Positions 555 through 31,066 of a stretch of DNA of 32,000 bases are shown piece after piece (position 1 is the stretch's first letter; each line of letters opens with the position of its first letter). Source of the stretch: Paramicrosporidium saccamoebae KSL3 (Eukaryota > Fungi > Cryptomycota); assembly GCA_002794465.1 (NCBI GenBank), contig MTSL01000142.1, positions 10,093 to 42,092 on the forward strand, written 5' to 3'. The notes beneath the pieces are model-generated. The model did no database searches and had not been told where the DNA came from. It saw only the letters and a program-made list of their open reading frames with translations. The translations under genes were made by a program, and so were the position numbers.

Positions 555-683
555 ATTCGATCCCATAGATGTTCACTGATTGGTTAAAACCAAAAGTCCA
601 TTTAAGGAGCGGACTCCCCGGTCTGGTAAAGTCTTACTGAGAATGGTACGTATCCGGGATGGCAACATCCATCCGTCCTCAGG

Positions 684-747
684 ATGATGATATTCGCATT
701 ACGGACTAGAGTTTCTGACTACCCGTGATTAGAAACGCGAATACTGA
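684..747 (+). ncRNA. snR78: Box C/D snoRNA, snR78 homologue (LSU Um2421, yeast numbering)
   Basis: Box C ATGATGA 684-690, guide GGACTAGAGT 703-712, D' CTGA 715-718, C' GTGATT 725-730, D CTGA 744-747. The guide pairs with conserved LSU ACUCUAGU and the +5 nucleotide A710 falls on the first U. ACTAGAGTTTCTGA...GTGATTAG matches yeast snR78 as I recall it. Confidence 0.88.
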
Positions 748-844
748 CGCCGGACGTGCTTGAAACATGTCTTACCTCTAGATTTGTGGTGACACTGTCG
801 TTCTCGCTTCGCTTTGTGAATGATGAATGTAAGTATACTTGCGA

Positions 845-909
845 ATGATGAAATGCCTTACACAAGCTGGAATTACCGGCTGAAATCTGTGATGTGAATG
901 GCCTACTGA
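845..909 (+). ncRNA. snR77: Box C/D snoRNA, snR77 homologue (SSU Um578)
   Basis: Box C 845-851. The 13-nt guide GCTGGAATTACCG (866-878) is the exact complement of the universal SSU sequence CGGUAAUUCCAGC. D' CTGA 880-883, with +5 A875 on the U of GGU. C' GTGATG 889-894, D CTGA 906-909, terminal GCG/CGC stem. Confidence 0.9.
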
Positions 910-974
910 CGCATCTTGGTTGTTGCGATACTAATTCCTAGATGAACAAAATCAAGGTATGGTGTGGTGGTGCT

Positions 975-1041
975 ATGATGAGACGATGACGAGTCGGACT
1001 ATGATGAAGATTTTTTTATTCCATTCATGCCAAATCTCTGA
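975..1041 (+). ncRNA. snR75: Box C/D snoRNA, snR75 homologue (LSU Gm2288)
   Basis: Box C 975-981. Guide GATGACGAG (985-993) is complementary to LSU CUCGUCAUC. D' CGGA 995-998, with +5 C990 on the G. C' ATGATGA 1001-1007. A second element CCATTCATGC (1021-1030) is complementary to nearby LSU GCAUGAAUGG. D CTGA 1038-1041, terminal GTGCT/AGCAC stem. Confidence 0.88.
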
Positions 1042-1111
1042 GCACATTCTGTGGGGCTCTTCTTATCACTAGACGCGTGTGTGACCTGTCAAGATGTGTG
1101 TTGAAGGCCCT

Positions 1112-1161
1112 ATGATGCTGTTACAAGCATATGTCTGTATATTGATGACACTCAACACTGA
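1112..1161 (+). ncRNA. snR74: Box C/D snoRNA, snR74 (vertebrate U27) homologue (SSU Am28)
   Basis: Terminal stem GGCCCT 1106-1111 / AGGGCC 1161-1166. Box C ATGATGC 1112-1118. Guide ACAAGCATATG (1123-1133) is the exact complement of SSU nt 25-35, CAUAUGCUUGU. D' CTGT 1135-1138 puts +5 on A28. C' TGATGA 1143-1148, D CTGA 1158-1161. Confidence 0.88.
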
Positions 1162-1217
1162 GGGCCAAGCAACTGTTGAAATTTGCAGCAATTACAAAGG
1201 TATCGAGTTTTGTCGGG

Positions 1218-1290
1218 ATGATGAGTTCAATTCACGACGGTCTTAATAGTTGTATAACAATGATTAAGAGGCCTGAAGGCATGTCTCTGA
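1218..1290 (+). ncRNA. snR73: Box C/D snoRNA, snR73 (vertebrate U35) homologue (LSU Cm2959)
   Basis: Box C 1218-1224. The 12-nt guide TCACGACGGTCT (1232-1243) is the exact complement of LSU AGACCGUCGUGA. C' ATGATT 1260-1265, D CTGA 1287-1290, GGG/CCC stem. The D' position reads AATA, which is non-canonical. Confidence 0.8.
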
Positions 1291-1553
1291 CCCACGCATT
1301 GTGTCAACAGTTTCTAATCTATAGTAATTGTAGGTGAATTCAAGGAGTTTAATAAAATTGTAATCTCCAACGACTGGTATCAGTCTCTCTAGCTGTATTA
1401 CCACTCCCTATGCAAGTGATAAGGGAGACTGACTACTTGTGGGTGAGGCATAAAGATGCCCACAAATGGCCGGTCAAAAATGAGGATTCTGGCAAGTGAC
1501 ACCAGAAAGTCTCAATGCTACGCAATTCAAATTTCTGGCCAACTCGGACGACT

Positions 1554-3526: not shown

Positions 3527-3562
3527 AACAAAAAGTGCGACTTCTGTGGATTGAACACAGGG

Positions 3563-3601
<39 letters not shown>

Positions 3602-3649
3602 AAGTCGCAACTGACAATGTAAAATTGTAATGTTGATATAAATTATTTT

Positions 3650-5863: not shown

Positions 5864-6742
5864 TTAGCGACGGATCTGTTCGATAATCTTGCTGACAAAC
5901 TCGTGGATAGAGGGCGCATTCTGGGCCGTGATTAAACGCTCGTCAATGACAACATTGGTCTCGAACGGCTTCTTGATCTCAGTCTTGGCACCACGCTCCT
6001 TCACACGCTCTTCTAGATAGAAAGGCAGATACTTTTCATAGCCCGTCTGTCGCTCCTCCTCCTTGGAGAAGCAGGTGATCCGCTTACCCTTAATCAACCA
6101 ATCGCCACGTCGCTCCATGCGCACATTGAGCAGGCCAGCAACTCCATGCCCAATGGCTGCCACAACACCATTGCGCTTGTAAATCTCGGCAATGGTACAG
6201 GCAACATCGTCATGTTCTGGAAGATCAAACATGGCTCCATGACCACCGGGGAGGATGACCATCTTGAACTCTTCAGGCTTCACCCAACTGATGGGAACAG
6301 TATGGCCCATCTTGGCGATAAAGTCGCGCTCATCTCGCAGATTATCACGGAGCTTAGAGTCCTTCTCAATACGTTCCATGGAGAGCGGATCGGCAGCAAC
6401 GGGTCCACCACGAGGGGTAGCAAAGACAAGCTCCATGTTGTACTGCTTCTTCAGTGTCATCCAAATGTAGCCCAACTCAAAGACATCCACACCAGTAGGC
6501 TGATGGCTGGCACCAAAGGTCGTCTCAGTGCCCTGGATGGCAGAGTAGTTGGTGGGCGGATCCATAATGGTGGGCTGCGAGGGCAGCCACGCAGAGGGAG
6601 ATCCAGGCACAACGGGTCCGTTTTCGTTGTTCATAGAGGTCGTTCCATCCTGGGAAAGACGACGTCCGCCACGGCCCGACTTGGGCAAATAGGCCTCGTT
6701 GGTGAGGATAATTAGGGCCTTCTTGTTTGCTAGGTTTTCCAT
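5864..6742 (-). CDS. Hsp31/DJ-1-family protein, paralogue B; Cys replaced by Gly; long low-complexity N-terminal insertion
   Basis: TGVDVFE, FATPRGGPVAADP, ILPGGHGAMFDL, AAIGHG and VVIDERLITAQN. First ATG at 6742. Confidence 0.9.
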   Translation of the reverse strand: MENLANKKALIILTNEAYLPKSGRGGRRLSQDGTTSMNNENGPVVPGSPSAWLPSQPTIMDPPTNYSAIQGTETTFGASHQPTGVDVFELGYIWMTLKKQYNMELVFATPRGGPVAADPLSMERIEKDSKLRDNLRDERDFIAKMGHTVPISWVKPEEFKMVILPGGHGAMFDLPEHDDVACTIAEIYKRNGVVAAIGHGVAGLLNVRMERRGDWLIKGKRITCFSKEEERQTGYEKYLPFYLEERVKERGAKTEIKKPFETNVVIDERLITAQNAPSIHEFVSKIIEQIRR

Positions 6743-6939: not shown

Positions 6940-7665
6940 ATGTCCCACTCCCACAGCCACGTTCTCGTCGTCCTCACCAACACCCGTGACCTGCCCTCCA
7001 CCGGTCGTGATACTGAAGATGCCAACCCCCGCACCGGTTTTGATGTCAAGGAAGTCGCTTATCTTTACGAGTGTCTGACCAAGGAGCACAAGATTGAGCT
7101 CATCTTTGCCTCCCCCAAGGGTGGTGAGGCCTACATTGATCCCTGCAGCATGGATGCCAGTCGCAATGACGAGATTGTCGCAAAGTTCATGAAGGATCAG
7201 GACGCCATGCAGAAGATCAAGAACACCAAGAAGCTCCGTGATGTCCGCAGTCAAAAGTTCCTGGGTGCCGTCTTCCCCGGCGGTGCTGGTGTGTTGATCG
7301 ACTTGCCCAACGAGTCCATGGTCAACGACATTGTCCAGGAAATCTATCCCCGTCACGAGGGATTCATTGCTGCCATTGGTCACGGTCTTGCCGCCCTGTT
7401 GAACGTCAAGAGCGAAAAGGGCGACTTGTGGCTCCGGGGCAAGCGCGTCACCTGTCAGACATTAGAAGAAGAGAAGGAGCTGAAGCTGGAGCGTGCCCTC
7501 CCCTTCATGATCGAGGACAAGCTCAAGCAGATTGGTGCCAAATTTGAAAAGGCCACCAAATTCCAACCTTACGTCGTTGAGGATGAGCGTCTCATCACTG
7601 CCCAGAACAACTACTCGGTCAAGGAGTGGGTTACTGCAATTAAGCGCCATTGTCGTATGAACTAA
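6940..7665 (+). CDS. Hsp31/DJ-1-family protein, paralogue C; Cys replaced by Gly
   Basis: TGFDVKE, FASPKGGEAYIDP, VFPGGAGVLIDL, AAIGHG and VVEDERLITAQN. Divergent from paralogue B across 197 bp. Confidence 0.9.
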   Translation: MSHSHSHVLVVLTNTRDLPSTGRDTEDANPRTGFDVKEVAYLYECLTKEHKIELIFASPKGGEAYIDPCSMDASRNDEIVAKFMKDQDAMQKIKNTKKLRDVRSQKFLGAVFPGGAGVLIDLPNESMVNDIVQEIYPRHEGFIAAIGHGLAALLNVKSEKGDLWLRGKRVTCQTLEEEKELKLERALPFMIEDKLKQIGAKFEKATKFQPYVVEDERLITAQNNYSVKEWVTAIKRHCRMN

Positions 7666-12119: not shown

Positions 12120-12754
12120 GCTTGTAACGTCGGCTCTTTTTGTTGCCCTGGCCGTTATTATTCTGTAAACGTTATCTCTCTAAGTTGATTGGTCGCCTTG
12201 GTAAATATCTCAAACAACAATCCAGGGCCACATTAGTGGCCAGTGATACATAATGTCACTTTGTTGTATAAAAGACGGATAACGCTCAATAAATTAAGCT
12301 CTTGTGCGGAGCATCCGATAGTGAGGCCCTGAACATAGGGGCTGTACAACCACATCGCAGTCGACAACCTGATCAATCCATCTCTCATCATCGAAATCGC
12401 GCCAGAGATGACCCGATCAACTCGATAGTGCCACTCCTGGGCGTCGCCAAAAAAGATAATACCAGCATTGGAAGTAGTTGTTTTAAGCTCGATAACGATA
12501 GATTCCATTGTTTTCATTGATCGGTCTGCATGTTTTCTTACTGGGTCCGGAGCATGAAAGTTGACTCCCTAAAACCCACGCAGCAAACAGTCTTGATGAT
12601 CTGGACTACACCGGTAAATCTCTACAGCATATATTATCTATATATGATACTACAAACAAGCCTTTTTACTTTCGCTTCTGCTCCATATTTTTATCACAGA
12701 AATATAGTCAGTGGCCCCGCACTCGCCTATTAATTCCCGACAGGGGGTCTCTAC

Positions 12755-21157: not shown

Positions 21158-22990
21158 ATGTTGCGTTCATTAATGTATGAATGCGATCATAGTATGGCCA
21201 GGGCCATGAAGACATTGCTTAATGCTCTCCTTTTTGTTCTCGCGAGCCAAGGAGCTTGTGTAGCTAAAGGCCCTAATTTAGGAGATGGCGACAACGGCGT
21301 AGGTACTAAAGTGGGGAGCTTAGCCGACCTGCTTGAGCGTGGCAATAGACTAGAGTTGAAGGAGCTGGACGTCGAACTTGGAAAAGCACTGGGAGAAGAC
21401 ATTAGCGTACAGGATGCCTGGATCATCATGTCCAACAGCGCAACGTTTCACAAAGATGCGATTCCACTCATCAGGGAAGCCGTGAAAATGGGCTATAATA
21501 ACTACCTAAAATGCATGCTGAATGTCAGTTTTCCCTGGTGGCAGAATGAAAATGATCGCCATTGGTTCTTGGCATTGTCATACAAGGCGAGCTGGTACAA
21601 CAAAGATTTGTGGACTGCACATCGACCAACTTTATATTGGAGGGAGCATATGGATGCCGCAATCAGGGCGGATAATCTGGTGTTTACACTATCTCGTCCC
21701 AGAACATTTGGAGCAGCTCTTAAAAACCCCGAAATGGTTGACAAGTTTATTGAACACGATTCTGCCAAGCTGGTGGGGCACTATATCAATGATTTGAGTG
21801 TATTTACTGACAAGGTACAAGACTTGGTGTCTGCTGGTTCCGTTAACATTCTGCGTTTTTTAACAGAACAGGACATTCCGCTGAATACAGTTAGCATCCC
21901 TATGGAGGATGCCTGCCGTGATGTGGAAATCTTGCGTTTACTGTACGGGTACGGATATCAAGTAAAACTGGAAAAGAGTGTGCTTAATACTTTTATGGAG
22001 GAGGGAAAGCTTGCGTACCTTGAATTCTTCTACCAGATCAGTGTGGAAAATCTTCCAAGTCATTATAGTGTTTTCGACGCAGCTATAGCAGGACACTTTG
22101 AGGCCGTCAAATGGGTAGCAAGCAAGTCTCGAGAGCTAATTCCGTCATATTTCACCCCGCGTGACAAAGTTGAAAGCGGCCATCTGGCGGTGCTACAATG
22201 GATATTTGAGCAGGACCAGATAAAGGAGATTCCCTGCTATATAATGGCGCAAGCTATTTTCAAGGAACAAGTGGACATTATGAACTGGGCATACGGAATC
22301 GATCCAGATATTTTAGAACGCTGCAAAGGATCGTTCCCATTAGCCAATGAAAGCCTCTGTGCGGACGGAAGTAGTGAAAGTTTGAAATGGCTACATGATC
22401 ATGACAAGGACCCAGCATTCCTTCTCAAAGAGTCTTGCTTATCTGCTGCCGCGAGAAACGGACGGCTAAATGTACTTACACTGGCCCGTCTCATAGGTTC
22501 CAATGCCCTTCCAACTGTCAGAGATCTTGATTGTACTGCTGGCCGGGGACATTTGGGTGTGCTCACATGGGCGTATTCTATTGACGAGAAACTTATTCCC
22601 ACTACAACCGGTGCGAATCACGCAGCGAAAAAAAATCACGTTGCAGTCCTCGATTGGTTGGCCTCAAAGAAGGTGTATCCCAGCCAGAAAGCTCTCGATA
22701 AGTGTGTTGAGCGTGGCAAATTGGAAACGGTGCACTGGATGATGAAAAAGTTCCCTACCATGGAGCCATCCTACTCGTCCACCCTTCAGGCTGCAGCTAC
22801 TGGCCGCATAGGAGTCATCAGGCATATTGACAAAACCAGGCCAAATTTACTCAAATATTCAGCGCTATTGGATGCAGCGAGAGCCAAAGGCTGGGATAGA
22901 ACTGTTGAGTTCTTAAAGGCAGCCGCATCAAGGTCCAAAGATGCTGCAGCCCCCGAATCCCGACTAGGATCGACGTATTGCTTAGTGTAG
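21158..22990 (+). CDS. Putatively secreted protein with degenerate ankyrin-like repeats
   Basis: Signal-peptide-like MKTLLNALLFVLASQGACVA (ATG at 21194 or 21206). About nine repeats of the A..G(H/R)L.VL.W type in the C-terminal half. Confidence 0.75.
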   Translation: MLRSLMYECDHSMARAMKTLLNALLFVLASQGACVAKGPNLGDGDNGVGTKVGSLADLLERGNRLELKELDVELGKALGEDISVQDAWIIMSNSATFHKDAIPLIREAVKMGYNNYLKCMLNVSFPWWQNENDRHWFLALSYKASWYNKDLWTAHRPTLYWREHMDAAIRADNLVFTLSRPRTFGAALKNPEMVDKFIEHDSAKLVGHYINDLSVFTDKVQDLVSAGSVNILRFLTEQDIPLNTVSIPMEDACRDVEILRLLYGYGYQVKLEKSVLNTFMEEGKLAYLEFFYQISVENLPSHYSVFDAAIAGHFEAVKWVASKSRELIPSYFTPRDKVESGHLAVLQWIFEQDQIKEIPCYIMAQAIFKEQVDIMNWAYGIDPDILERCKGSFPLANESLCADGSSESLKWLHDHDKDPAFLLKESCLSAAARNGRLNVLTLARLIGSNALPTVRDLDCTAGRGHLGVLTWAYSIDEKLIPTTTGANHAAKKNHVAVLDWLASKKVYPSQKALDKCVERGKLETVHWMMKKFPTMEPSYSSTLQAAATGRIGVIRHIDKTRPNLLKYSALLDAARAKGWDRTVEFLKAAASRSKDAAAPESRLGSTYCLV

Positions 22991-24089: not shown

Positions 24090-24772
24090 AATCCCTGGCT
24101 TGCAAATATATTATATCGCAATGCCACTTTCATTAATACATGGATGCGATCGGAGTATGGCCGGGGCCATGAAGACATTGCTGGGTACTCTTCTTTTCGC
24201 TTTAGCGAGTCAAGGAGTGCATGTGGCCAAGGCCCTAATTTAGGGGAGAGTGGCAGCGGCGCAGGCAATAAGGGGGCAAGCTGAGTCGACCTGCTTGAGC
24301 GTGGTAATGGACTGGCGTTAAAAGGGCTGGAGGTAGAGCTTGGAAAAGCACTGGGAGAAGGCATCAGTATACAGGATGCCTGGATTATCATGTCCAATAG
24401 CACAACGTTCCACAAGGATCCCATTACGCTTACCAGAGAGGCCATAAAATGGTCTATAATCATTAACTGAGATGCATGCTGATTTCCAGCCGCTCCTGGT
24501 ATTGCCATATAAAGCCCCCTGTTATGACAAAGATTTATGAAATGGTCATCAATCACAGCTGAATTGGGAGAAAAACATGGACGCAGTGATCAAGGCGGAC
24601 AATGTAGAATTCACAAAGACCCTCTCCGAGATACTAAAAGCCACGCTCCAAGATCCCGCAATCCGGTGTTTTGAAAGTGGTCTATAAAGAAGCCCTTGGT
24701 AAAGACACTTTTGATAAAGAAACCCTCTCGCTCACCAACAGGTCCTTTGTTGGAACCTGGTTGTAGATATAA
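24090..24772 (+). pseudogene. Degraded, internally deleted duplicate of the ankyrin-like gene and its flanks
   Basis: Co-linear similarity to about 21127-21735 (e.g. GGCCATGAAGACATTGCT, GACCTGCTTGAGCGTGG, CTTGGAAAAGCACTGGGAGAAG, CAGGATGCCTGGAT), with a 1-nt frameshift and stops. It then switches to similarity with the 3' flank at about 23127-23240. Confidence 0.85.
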
Positions 24773-30960: not shown

Positions 30961-31036
30961 CAGGATACATGATACATGATACATGATACAGGATACAGGA
31001 TACATGATATAGGATATAGGATATAGGATACAGGTA
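30961..31036. repeat. Heptamer microsatellite (C/T)A(T/G)GATA, 10 full copies, between convergent cyclin and SAS-6 stops
   Basis: CAGGATA, CATGATA and TAGGATA units in exact 7-nt register from 30961. Confidence 0.95.
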
Positions 31037-31066
31037 GTGGTTCCGATTGCACAAAAAAATCAAGGT

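Follow-up and report, generated by a model that had tools for sequence, protein, structure and literature searches.

A cluster of five box C/D small nucleolar RNAs (snoRNAs) lies in a 32,000-nucleotide (nt) stretch of the genome of Paramicrosporidium saccamoebae KSL3 (assembly GCA_002794465.1, contig MTSL01000142.1, positions 10,093 to 42,092; hereafter the window), in the gap between the end of CDC50 (554) and a DJ-1/PfpI gene annotated on the minus strand at 1554-2273. All five are on the plus strand, within 620 nt of this gap, and their order is snR78, snR77, snR75, snR74 and snR73. Judged by its sequence, the locus is an orthologue of the fungal 'cluster I' (snR78-snR72) but has only five members, snR76 and snR72 being absent. 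The segment 646-1324 (+) is probably a non-coding host gene of the UHG type, in which each of five short introns holds one snoRNA. The deposited annotation of MTSL01000142.1 has no gene call in the interval 555-1553, and the longest open reading frame (ORF) inside it, unspliced, is 53 amino acids (aa). A first-pass annotation of this DNA had described the gap as free of ORFs and had guessed that the organism is a rozellid; both statements hold. The MTSL accession belongs to P. saccamoebae, a rozellomycotan that the authors of its genome place as sister to Microsporidia (PMC5701793).

The five RNAs share the anatomy of box C/D snoRNAs. Each has a CUGA D box, recognizable D' and C' boxes and a terminal stem of 3-6 base pairs; the C box is canonical in all except the fourth, where it reads AUGAUGC. 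The snR78/U52 orthologue (sno1, 674-756) has its C box at 684-690, guide at 703-714, D' box CTGA at 715-718, C' box TGATTA at 727-732 and D box at 744-747, and is closed by an external stem, CGUCC (674-678) with GGACG (752-756). In the snR77/SNORD65 orthologue (sno2, 840-913), the C box (845-851) is followed by the guide (866-879), D' box CTGA (880-883), C' box GTGATGT (889-895) and D box (906-909), within a UGCG/CGCA stem. The snR75/U15 orthologue (sno3, 970-1045) is closed by GUGC/GCAC and contains a C box at 975-981, a guide at 985-994, D' box CGGA at 995-998, C' box ATGATGA at 1001-1007 and a D box at 1038-1041. The orthologue of snR74/U27 (sno4, 1105-1166) has the longer stem GGCCC/GGGCC, with C box ATGATGC at 1112-1118, guide at 1123-1134, D' box CTGT at 1135-1138, C' box TGATGA at 1143-1148 and D box at 1158-1161. 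Last comes the snR73/U35 orthologue (sno5, 1215-1293; stem GGG/CCC), with a C box at 1218-1224, guide at 1231-1244, degenerate D' box AATA at 1245-1248, C' box ATGATTA at 1259-1265 and D box at 1287-1290. The five box C/D RNAs of the first-pass annotation are thus confirmed where it had placed them, and on the same strand.

Guide targets were read on a eukaryotic contaminant ribosomal DNA (rDNA) contig, L021, found by scanning bacterial and archaeal assemblies for a eukaryote-specific 21-mer of the large-subunit (LSU) ribosomal RNA (rRNA). This contig contains a 1800-nt 18S and a 25S sequence, and it carries the expected base at 18/18 known yeast 2'-O-methyl positions in 18S and at 37/37 in 25S. 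Because all 55 known sites match, it can serve as a yeast-numbered reference. On this heterologous rDNA, the position 5 nt upstream of the D' box falls on a known yeast site in every one of the five snoRNAs, with 9-14 Watson-Crick pairs. The sites are those of the corresponding yeast snoRNAs: 25S U2421 for sno1 (snR78; 9 Watson-Crick and 3 GU pairs), 18S U578 for sno2 (snR77; 14 pairs), 25S G2288 for sno3 (snR75; 9 pairs), 18S A28 for sno4 (snR74; 11 pairs) and 25S C2959 for sno5 (snR73; 12 pairs). The first-pass annotation had recognized a D' box that fits such a site in four of them. Of 83 contaminant eukaryotic rDNAs, 29 have in their LSU precisely the sequence complementary to the sno1 guide, ACTCTAGTCCG, and the targets of the other four guides are nearly universal among these diverse rDNAs. 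The sno1 guide predicts that the P. saccamoebae LSU would read ACUCUAGUCCG or ACUCUAGUCUG at this place.

Further pairing capacity was found in sno3, where an accessory element at 1021-1031 (CCATTCATGCC / CCAUUCAUGC) is complementary to 25S 2307-2316 and invariant in four taxa. The same extra base-pairing exists in yeast, where its mutation cuts methylation of G2288 four- to five-fold (PMC3116282). The regions upstream of the D boxes gave no convincing rRNA target on the yeast-numbered reference in any of the five. In sno1, the position of a second guide is instead occupied by an internal helix, in which UAUUCGC (691-697, after box C) pairs with GCGAAUA (737-743, before box D). We read it as a helix rather than a guide because its two arms pair and co-vary, the relative L243 described below having UAUUUGC and GCAAAUA. 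A second guide of the snR72 type, as known from Pezizomycotina, is absent from sno1. More broadly, no antisense to the snR76 site (25S C2197) or the snR72 site (25S A876) was found in the cluster of the window or of its relatives. Elsewhere in the window, candidates for snR76 were chance 8-9-mers inside coding sequence and nothing more. An identical 19-mer, cttggaaaagcactgggag, at ~21377-21395 and ~24339-24357 (+) also gave chance antisense matches to C2197, without snoRNA boxes; it probably marks two paralogous coding genes.

Family assignments came from Rfam and from direct comparison with a published cluster. In an Rfam search of 500-1500 on both strands at an E-value threshold, five non-overlapping matches were returned on the plus strand, and the top family at each position is the expected one: snR78 at 677-749 (31.7 bits against a gathering threshold of 48, E 0.0095), snoR77Y at 839-917 (45.7 against 52, E 2e-7), snR75 at 973-1043 (39.3 against 40, E 2e-6), SNORD27 at 1107-1165 (32.6 against 52, E 0.0017) and SNORD35 at 1215-1298 (17.8 against 36, E 0.63). 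SNORD27 (U27) is the human counterpart of snR74, and SNORD35 (U35) is the counterpart of snR73. Nothing comparable appeared on the minus strand. The Rfam hits anticipated by the first-pass annotation are therefore lacking at curated thresholds, but the five below them are specific to the expected families. Each snoRNA of the window also scores highest against the expected member of the Magnaporthe grisea cluster (sequences from the supplement of PMC3596301); the top match of sno1 is M. grisea snR78, and the strongest match of sno5 is M. grisea snR73. Rfam families, D' targets and M. grisea matches thus agree on the identities and order 78-77-75-74-73, as had been proposed. An Rfam scan of the whole window at an E-value threshold returned no further snoRNA, and a scan of the window for 10-mer rRNA antisense followed by CTGA gave no other candidate with a nearby C box.

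The strongest and decisive evidence is comparative and comes from related environmental genomes. A protein search with a CDC50 fragment in Logan, ENA and NCBI assemblies identified eight relatives with 58-71% identity, and three of these, L243, L247 and L250 (66-71% identical in CDC50), bear the cluster. The 11-kb contig of L243 is syntenic over nine genes; there CDC50 and DJ-1 are 1.2 kb apart, and all five snoRNAs lie between them in the order seen in the window. L247 likewise has all five, in order, between CDC50 and DJ-1, and L250 has the first three in order before its contig ends. In a fourth, L245, the contig includes the first 5' splice site but ends inside sno1. In L244, L246 and L248, which are more distant in CDC50, another gene directly follows CDC50 and no cluster was found in the available DNA; the contig of L249 ends 139 nt past CDC50, with no cluster in that stretch.

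All 13 snoRNAs of the relatives, snR74 included, are flanked by a GT 5' splice site, a yUnAy motif and YAG. The 5' sites read GTATGT, GTAAGT, GTAAGA, GTACGT, GTATGC, GTAACC, GTATTA, GTATTC, GTACAC or GTAGTG, and the yUnAy motifs CTAAC, CTGAT, CTCAT, CTTAT, CTTAC or TTAAT. Between relatives and P. saccamoebae, the snoRNA bodies are 70-97% identical (sno1 82-86%, sno2 84-97%, sno4 74-78%), whereas the exons vary in length and are 18-54% identical, at or below the level of a shuffled control (mean 58%). Boxes, D' guides and the snR75 accessory element are invariant across the relatives while their flanks diverge, and terminal stems are preserved by compensatory changes, as in the sno2 stem of L247. 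Even the degenerate D' boxes (CGGA in sno3, CTGT in sno4, AATA in sno5) are conserved in degenerate form. The D' box of sno5 aligns with that of SNORD35 and reads AUUA in the relatives and CAUA in snR73 of Pezizomycotina; the snR73 D' box is known as conserved yet non-consensus, and it is divergent in yeasts too (PMC3116282). Selection appears to act on the snoRNAs and the splice signals and not on the exons, as predicted if each snoRNA sits in an intron of its own within a non-coding host gene. In the relatives, two families moreover pass their Rfam gathering thresholds, snR75 with 45.6 (L243), 42.8 and 40.2 bits against 40 and SNORD65 with 41.2 bits (L243) against 41. Three relatives keep this order and place each snoRNA in a GT..YAG unit of its own, which strengthens the earlier proposal of an old synteny and an old intronic state.

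In the window itself, we assign 601-645 to a putative promoter-proximal stretch together with the first exon of the host RNA; it has TTTAAG at 601 and CCCCGG at 616 and closes with ATG before the first 5' splice site. Intron 1 (646-781, 136 nt) runs from GTACGT to CTTAC ctc TAG and holds sno1. It is followed by the non-coding exon 2 (782-828, 47 nt), which is unalignable with its counterparts in the relatives (40-54% identity; shuffled control mean 58%). Intron 2 (829-941, 113 nt; GTAAGT ... CTAAT tcc TAG) holds sno2, exon 3 covers 942-956 (15 nt), and intron 3 (957-1072, 116 nt; GTATGG ... CTTAT cac TAG) holds sno3. Around sno4 we place a putative intron 4 (1096-1188, 93 nt; GTGTGT ... CAG), which would leave an exon 4 of 23 nt (1073-1095) and an exon 5 of 11 nt (1189-1199). 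Its alternative 3' end is an AG at 1198-1199, after ATTAC, which abuts the next 5' site and would make the following exon zero-length; other fungi are known to have introns that abut in this way (PMC3596301, Table S3). Intron 5 (1200-1324, 125 nt; GTATCG ... CTAAT cta TAG) holds sno5, and the last exon (1325-1375) contains AATAAA at 1351-1356, with an equivalent AATAAA in L243 (7979) and L247 (2256). The longest ORF of the spliced RNA has ~14 codons.

The 3' ends of introns 1, 2, 3 and 5 all conform to one 11-nt pattern, CTWAY-NNN-TAG. Allowing YAG, the two strands of the whole window together contain seven copies of this pattern, and four of them are on the plus strand of 646-1324. Each of the four ends 31-34 nt past a D box, where 0.09 would be expected. 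The distance from 5' site to C box is 38, 16, 18 and 18 nt in introns 1, 2, 3 and 5 and 16 nt in the putative intron 4. Spliceosomal signals therefore place four of the five snoRNAs of the window (all but sno4) in introns, and 13 of 13 in the relatives. The four introns of the first-pass annotation, at 646/781, 829/941, 957/1072 and 1200/1324, do begin with GT and end with AG, but that scheme leaves snR74 exonic, in an exon 4 reaching 1199. An intron of its own is the likelier reading for snR74 because the relatives have it, clearly so in L243 and L247, and because, in the window, GTGTGT at 1096 could serve as its 5' site, with CAG at 1188 or AG at 1199 as the 3' site.

Two small sequence elements in this region were noted in passing. 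A CATCCATCCGTCC / (CATC)n element lies at 666-678 inside intron 1, just upstream of the C box of sno1, and is present in all five related loci (the window, L243 at 7111-7123, L245, L247 and L250); it is expanded to ~7 CATC repeats in L247, and the external stem of sno1 takes its 5' arm from the 3' part of this element. An orphan C-box-like ATGATGA is found in exon 2 at 820-826, two bases before the GTAAGT of intron 2, without a matching D box or guide.

Several observations weigh against an intronic host gene or against the identities of its snoRNAs. At the Rfam gathering thresholds there is no match in the cluster region, none of the five snoRNAs passing, and the SNORD35 match is weak even at the relaxed setting. 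The guide targets were read on the rDNA of other eukaryotes. Intron 4 has a weak 5' site in the window, GTGTGT, and no good branch motif, and the 5' site of intron 5, GTATCG, has a C at +5. Introns sought in nearby coding genes from annotated gene lengths could seldom be placed uniquely and showed no clean consensus. Joining ORFs across GT..AG pairs, another route to a species splice consensus, yielded mostly noise. Finally, a promoter would have little space, since the first 5' splice site comes only 91 nt after the CDC50 stop.

This short distance also bears on where the transcript would start. If the CDC50 mRNA had a long 3' untranslated extension with the snoRNA introns in it, they would be made by read-through and need no separate promoter; the cluster is on the CDC50 strand, its first 5' splice site follows the CDC50 stop so closely, and the adjacency of CDC50 and cluster is preserved in four relatives. 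We nevertheless consider such an arrangement unlikely. An AATAAA stands at the CDC50 stop in the window (550) and within ~70 nt past the stop in L247, L250 and L245, the spacer from CDC50 to the first 5' site ranges from 91 to 323 nt (323 nt in L243), and in more distant relatives other genes directly follow CDC50. Moreover, four of five loci have, 30-60 nt before the first GT, a T/A-rich box with CCGGGG or CCCCGG 8-20 nt downstream of it. This candidate promoter or initiator, whose box reads TTTAAG, ATAAAAG, TATAAA or TTTAGT, is found at 601-621 in the window, 7036-7052 in L243, 1103-1128 in L250 and 4615-4633 in L245. Together, the T/A-CCGGGG box and the AATAAA at the end of CDC50 lead us to favor a separate promoter over read-through. 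The candidate element recalls start signals of a CCC/GGG-like type known from Microsporidia (PMC5499648).

Two accounts dispense with splicing altogether. The RNAs could be released from an unspliced polycistron by RNase III (Rnt1) cleavage and exonuclease trimming, with the splice-like motifs unused, as snR78-snR72 of S. cerevisiae is known to be processed; de-intronization of the cluster has been discussed (PMC3596301), and the terminal stems of the snoRNAs would stop exonucleases. Yet none of the four internal spacers contains an extended AGNN-capped stem, which makes an Rnt1-dependent route unlikely. The GT, yUnAy and YAG signals are kept around the snoRNAs in four genomes while the remaining spacer diverges, and the branch and 3'-site motifs cluster far above chance, so that we give this account very little weight. 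Marginally less probable still is that the locus consists of five independently transcribed genes or of decaying, non-working relics. The three degenerate D' boxes (CGGA, CTGT and AATA), the degenerate C box ATGATGC and the lack of any match at Rfam gathering scores could be taken for decay, but the relatives have conserved these degenerate boxes, yeasts too have a divergent D' box in snR73, and guides and boxes are invariant beside diverging flanks, with compensatory changes maintaining the stems. Spacers of 60-100 nt also leave no room for individual promoters.

Returning to the non-coding host gene, we infer from the sequence elements, the guide-target geometry, the orthology and the order and splice signals conserved in the relatives that the cluster would be transcribed as a single unit, spliced, processed and used for rRNA methylation. 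RNA polymerase II would probably start from a small promoter just after CDC50. Splicing would free each intron, and exonucleases would trim the debranched lariat back to the small nucleolar ribonucleoprotein (snoRNP), shielded from further trimming by its C/D kink-turn proteins and terminal stem. The spliced exons, of 11-47 nt, would be functionless in themselves. In each snoRNP, the guide upstream of D' would direct fibrillarin to one conserved rRNA site, namely 25S U2421, 18S U578, 25S G2288 (helped by the 10-11-nt accessory pairing), 18S A28 and 25S C2959. A transcriptome of P. saccamoebae exists (PMC5701793); exact-protein look-ups of two neighbors, DJ-1 and a 448-aa amidohydrolase, returned only the genome assembly and no contig derived from RNA-seq.

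The intronic form of the cluster is itself well known. The UHG-like organization was verified by reverse transcription PCR in Neurospora crassa (PMC2780460), and intronic clusters have been described for Euascomycetes, Basidiomycota and Rhizopus oryzae, the last of which also lacks the snR76 intron (PMC3596301). The first-pass annotation was therefore correct in assigning an intronic cluster to other ascomycetes but too narrow in scope, since Basidiomycota and Rhizopus had already been published (PMC3596301). Most fungi have no snR72 in the cluster, and several lineages lack one or both of snR76 and snR72 (PMC3596301). The new part is the phylogenetic depth. Searchable literature on snoRNAs with Rozella or Paramicrosporidium contained no report of this locus, and the text of 'The fungal snoRNAome', which has the cluster assembled at the Ascomycota root, never mentions Rozella or Cryptomycota (PMC5824354).

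Compared with the intronic cluster I of Neurospora crassa, Magnaporthe, Candida albicans, Basidiomycota and Rhizopus oryzae, the P. saccamoebae locus shares the families, their order and strand, the probable placement of one snoRNA per non-coding host intron, short unconserved exons, the snR75 accessory element and the divergent snR73 D' box. It differs in having five members only, with no snR76 or snR72 guide in the cluster, and in being more compact. Its introns measure 93-136 nt and its internal exons 47, 15, 23 and 11 nt (thus down to 11-15 nt), against introns of 117-249 nt and internal exons of 32-94 nt in L243, L247 and L250 and introns of 181-208 nt in M. grisea. A branch motif fixed 3 nt before TAG in four introns is a further difference, as is the lineage, Rozellomycota, sister to Microsporidia, from which searchable papers had not reported the cluster. 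The SNR78-SNR72 polycistron of S. cerevisiae has the same targets and the same relative order of 78, 77, 75, 74 and 73, all single-guide RNAs guided from D', but it has no introns, is made from an Rnt1-cut precursor and includes snR76 and snR72.

Mammalian hosts of the UHG/GAS5 type resemble the locus as multi-intron non-coding transcripts whose sole evident products are intronic box C/D snoRNAs, each in a separate intron. They differ in snoRNA content and are ~10x larger, and we saw no evidence at the P. saccamoebae locus of the 5' terminal oligopyrimidine (TOP) start that marks the mammalian UHG type. In human, U27 lies in the U22 host gene, and U15, U35 and U52 are in other genes. Microsporidia, the sister lineage, have compact genomes too (Encephalitozoon, Nosema), but they are reported to keep only three assignable box C/D guides (U31/snR67-, U38/snR61- and U40-46/snR63-like), none of them for small-subunit (SSU) rRNA (PMC5499648), whereas P. 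saccamoebae retains the cluster with its two 18S guides.

Other features of the window and of the sequences searched were recorded alongside. A tRNA-Phe (GAA) at 3535-3608 (-), with 69 bits, is the sole RNA of the window above a curated Rfam threshold. DJ-1/PfpI genes occur three times in ~6 kb, a local expansion (1554-2273 and 5864-6742 on the minus strand, 6940-7665 on the plus strand), and a DJ-1 gene also directly follows the cluster in L243 and L247. Just upstream of window position 1, an N-run (assembly gap; L122 ~12274-12400) interrupts CDC50, so the deposited 387-aa CDC50 model may be wrong near it. A short tandem array of 7-nt units, GGATA(T/C)A, lies at ~30990-31040 (+). A metagenome scan with the snR77 guide plus D' box as query returned mostly chance matches, with a C box at only seven loci. 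Only one of the scan loci, L152 (420-1199), is a cluster: a Dikarya-type intronic snR78-77-76-75 array of the same design plus snR76. L137 has two tandem snR77-like copies (1143 and 1708), and L128 and L163 show a different linkage, with an snR77-like RNA that follows an antisense match to the 18S A541 site at a distance of 390-470 nt. Eukaryotic rDNA contigs in >80 bacterial and archaeal assemblies and metagenome-assembled genomes of a GTDB-based collection (L002-L121 scan) represent contamination; complete yeast-numbered rDNA units among them include L021, L022, L048 and L067.

How old the arrangement is can be judged from the rozellid clade searched here together with the published Rhizopus and Dikarya data, on which any claim of ancestry to all Fungi rests. 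Convergence is unlikely because the order of five genes is identical (120 orderings; chance ~1 in 100). On balance we favor the view that a 78-77-75-74-73 cluster with one snoRNA per intron was present in the last common ancestor of all Fungi and that snR76 and snR72 joined later. If true, this moves the cluster and its intronic organization from Dikarya and Mucoromycota to the base of Fungi, contradicts the published assembly at the Ascomycota root (PMC5824354) and helps to settle the disagreement between that study and another that found the cluster in Zygomycota (PMC3596301). The observation made in the first-pass annotation is confirmed, and its interpretation, that both synteny and intronic state are old, is supported.

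The finding leaves the understanding of how box C/D snoRNAs work unchanged. It adds five unannotated, probably functional RNA genes to the reference genome of a key early-diverging fungus and indicates that curated Rfam thresholds miss such snoRNAs. Because guides for SSU rRNA are present in the sister group of Microsporidia, their microsporidian loss would date to after the split of the two lineages. If our reading is right, the host introns in the reduced Paramicrosporidium lineage would have been retained because they produce snoRNAs, and they would have been squeezed to a near-fixed geometry of 16-18 nt from 5' site to C box, 31-34 nt from D box to 3' site and a branch motif 3 nt before TAG. 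We speculate that this geometry may reflect a coupling of splicing and snoRNP assembly. The locus would then offer a compact natural example of the idea that introns persist in reduced genomes as carriers of snoRNAs.

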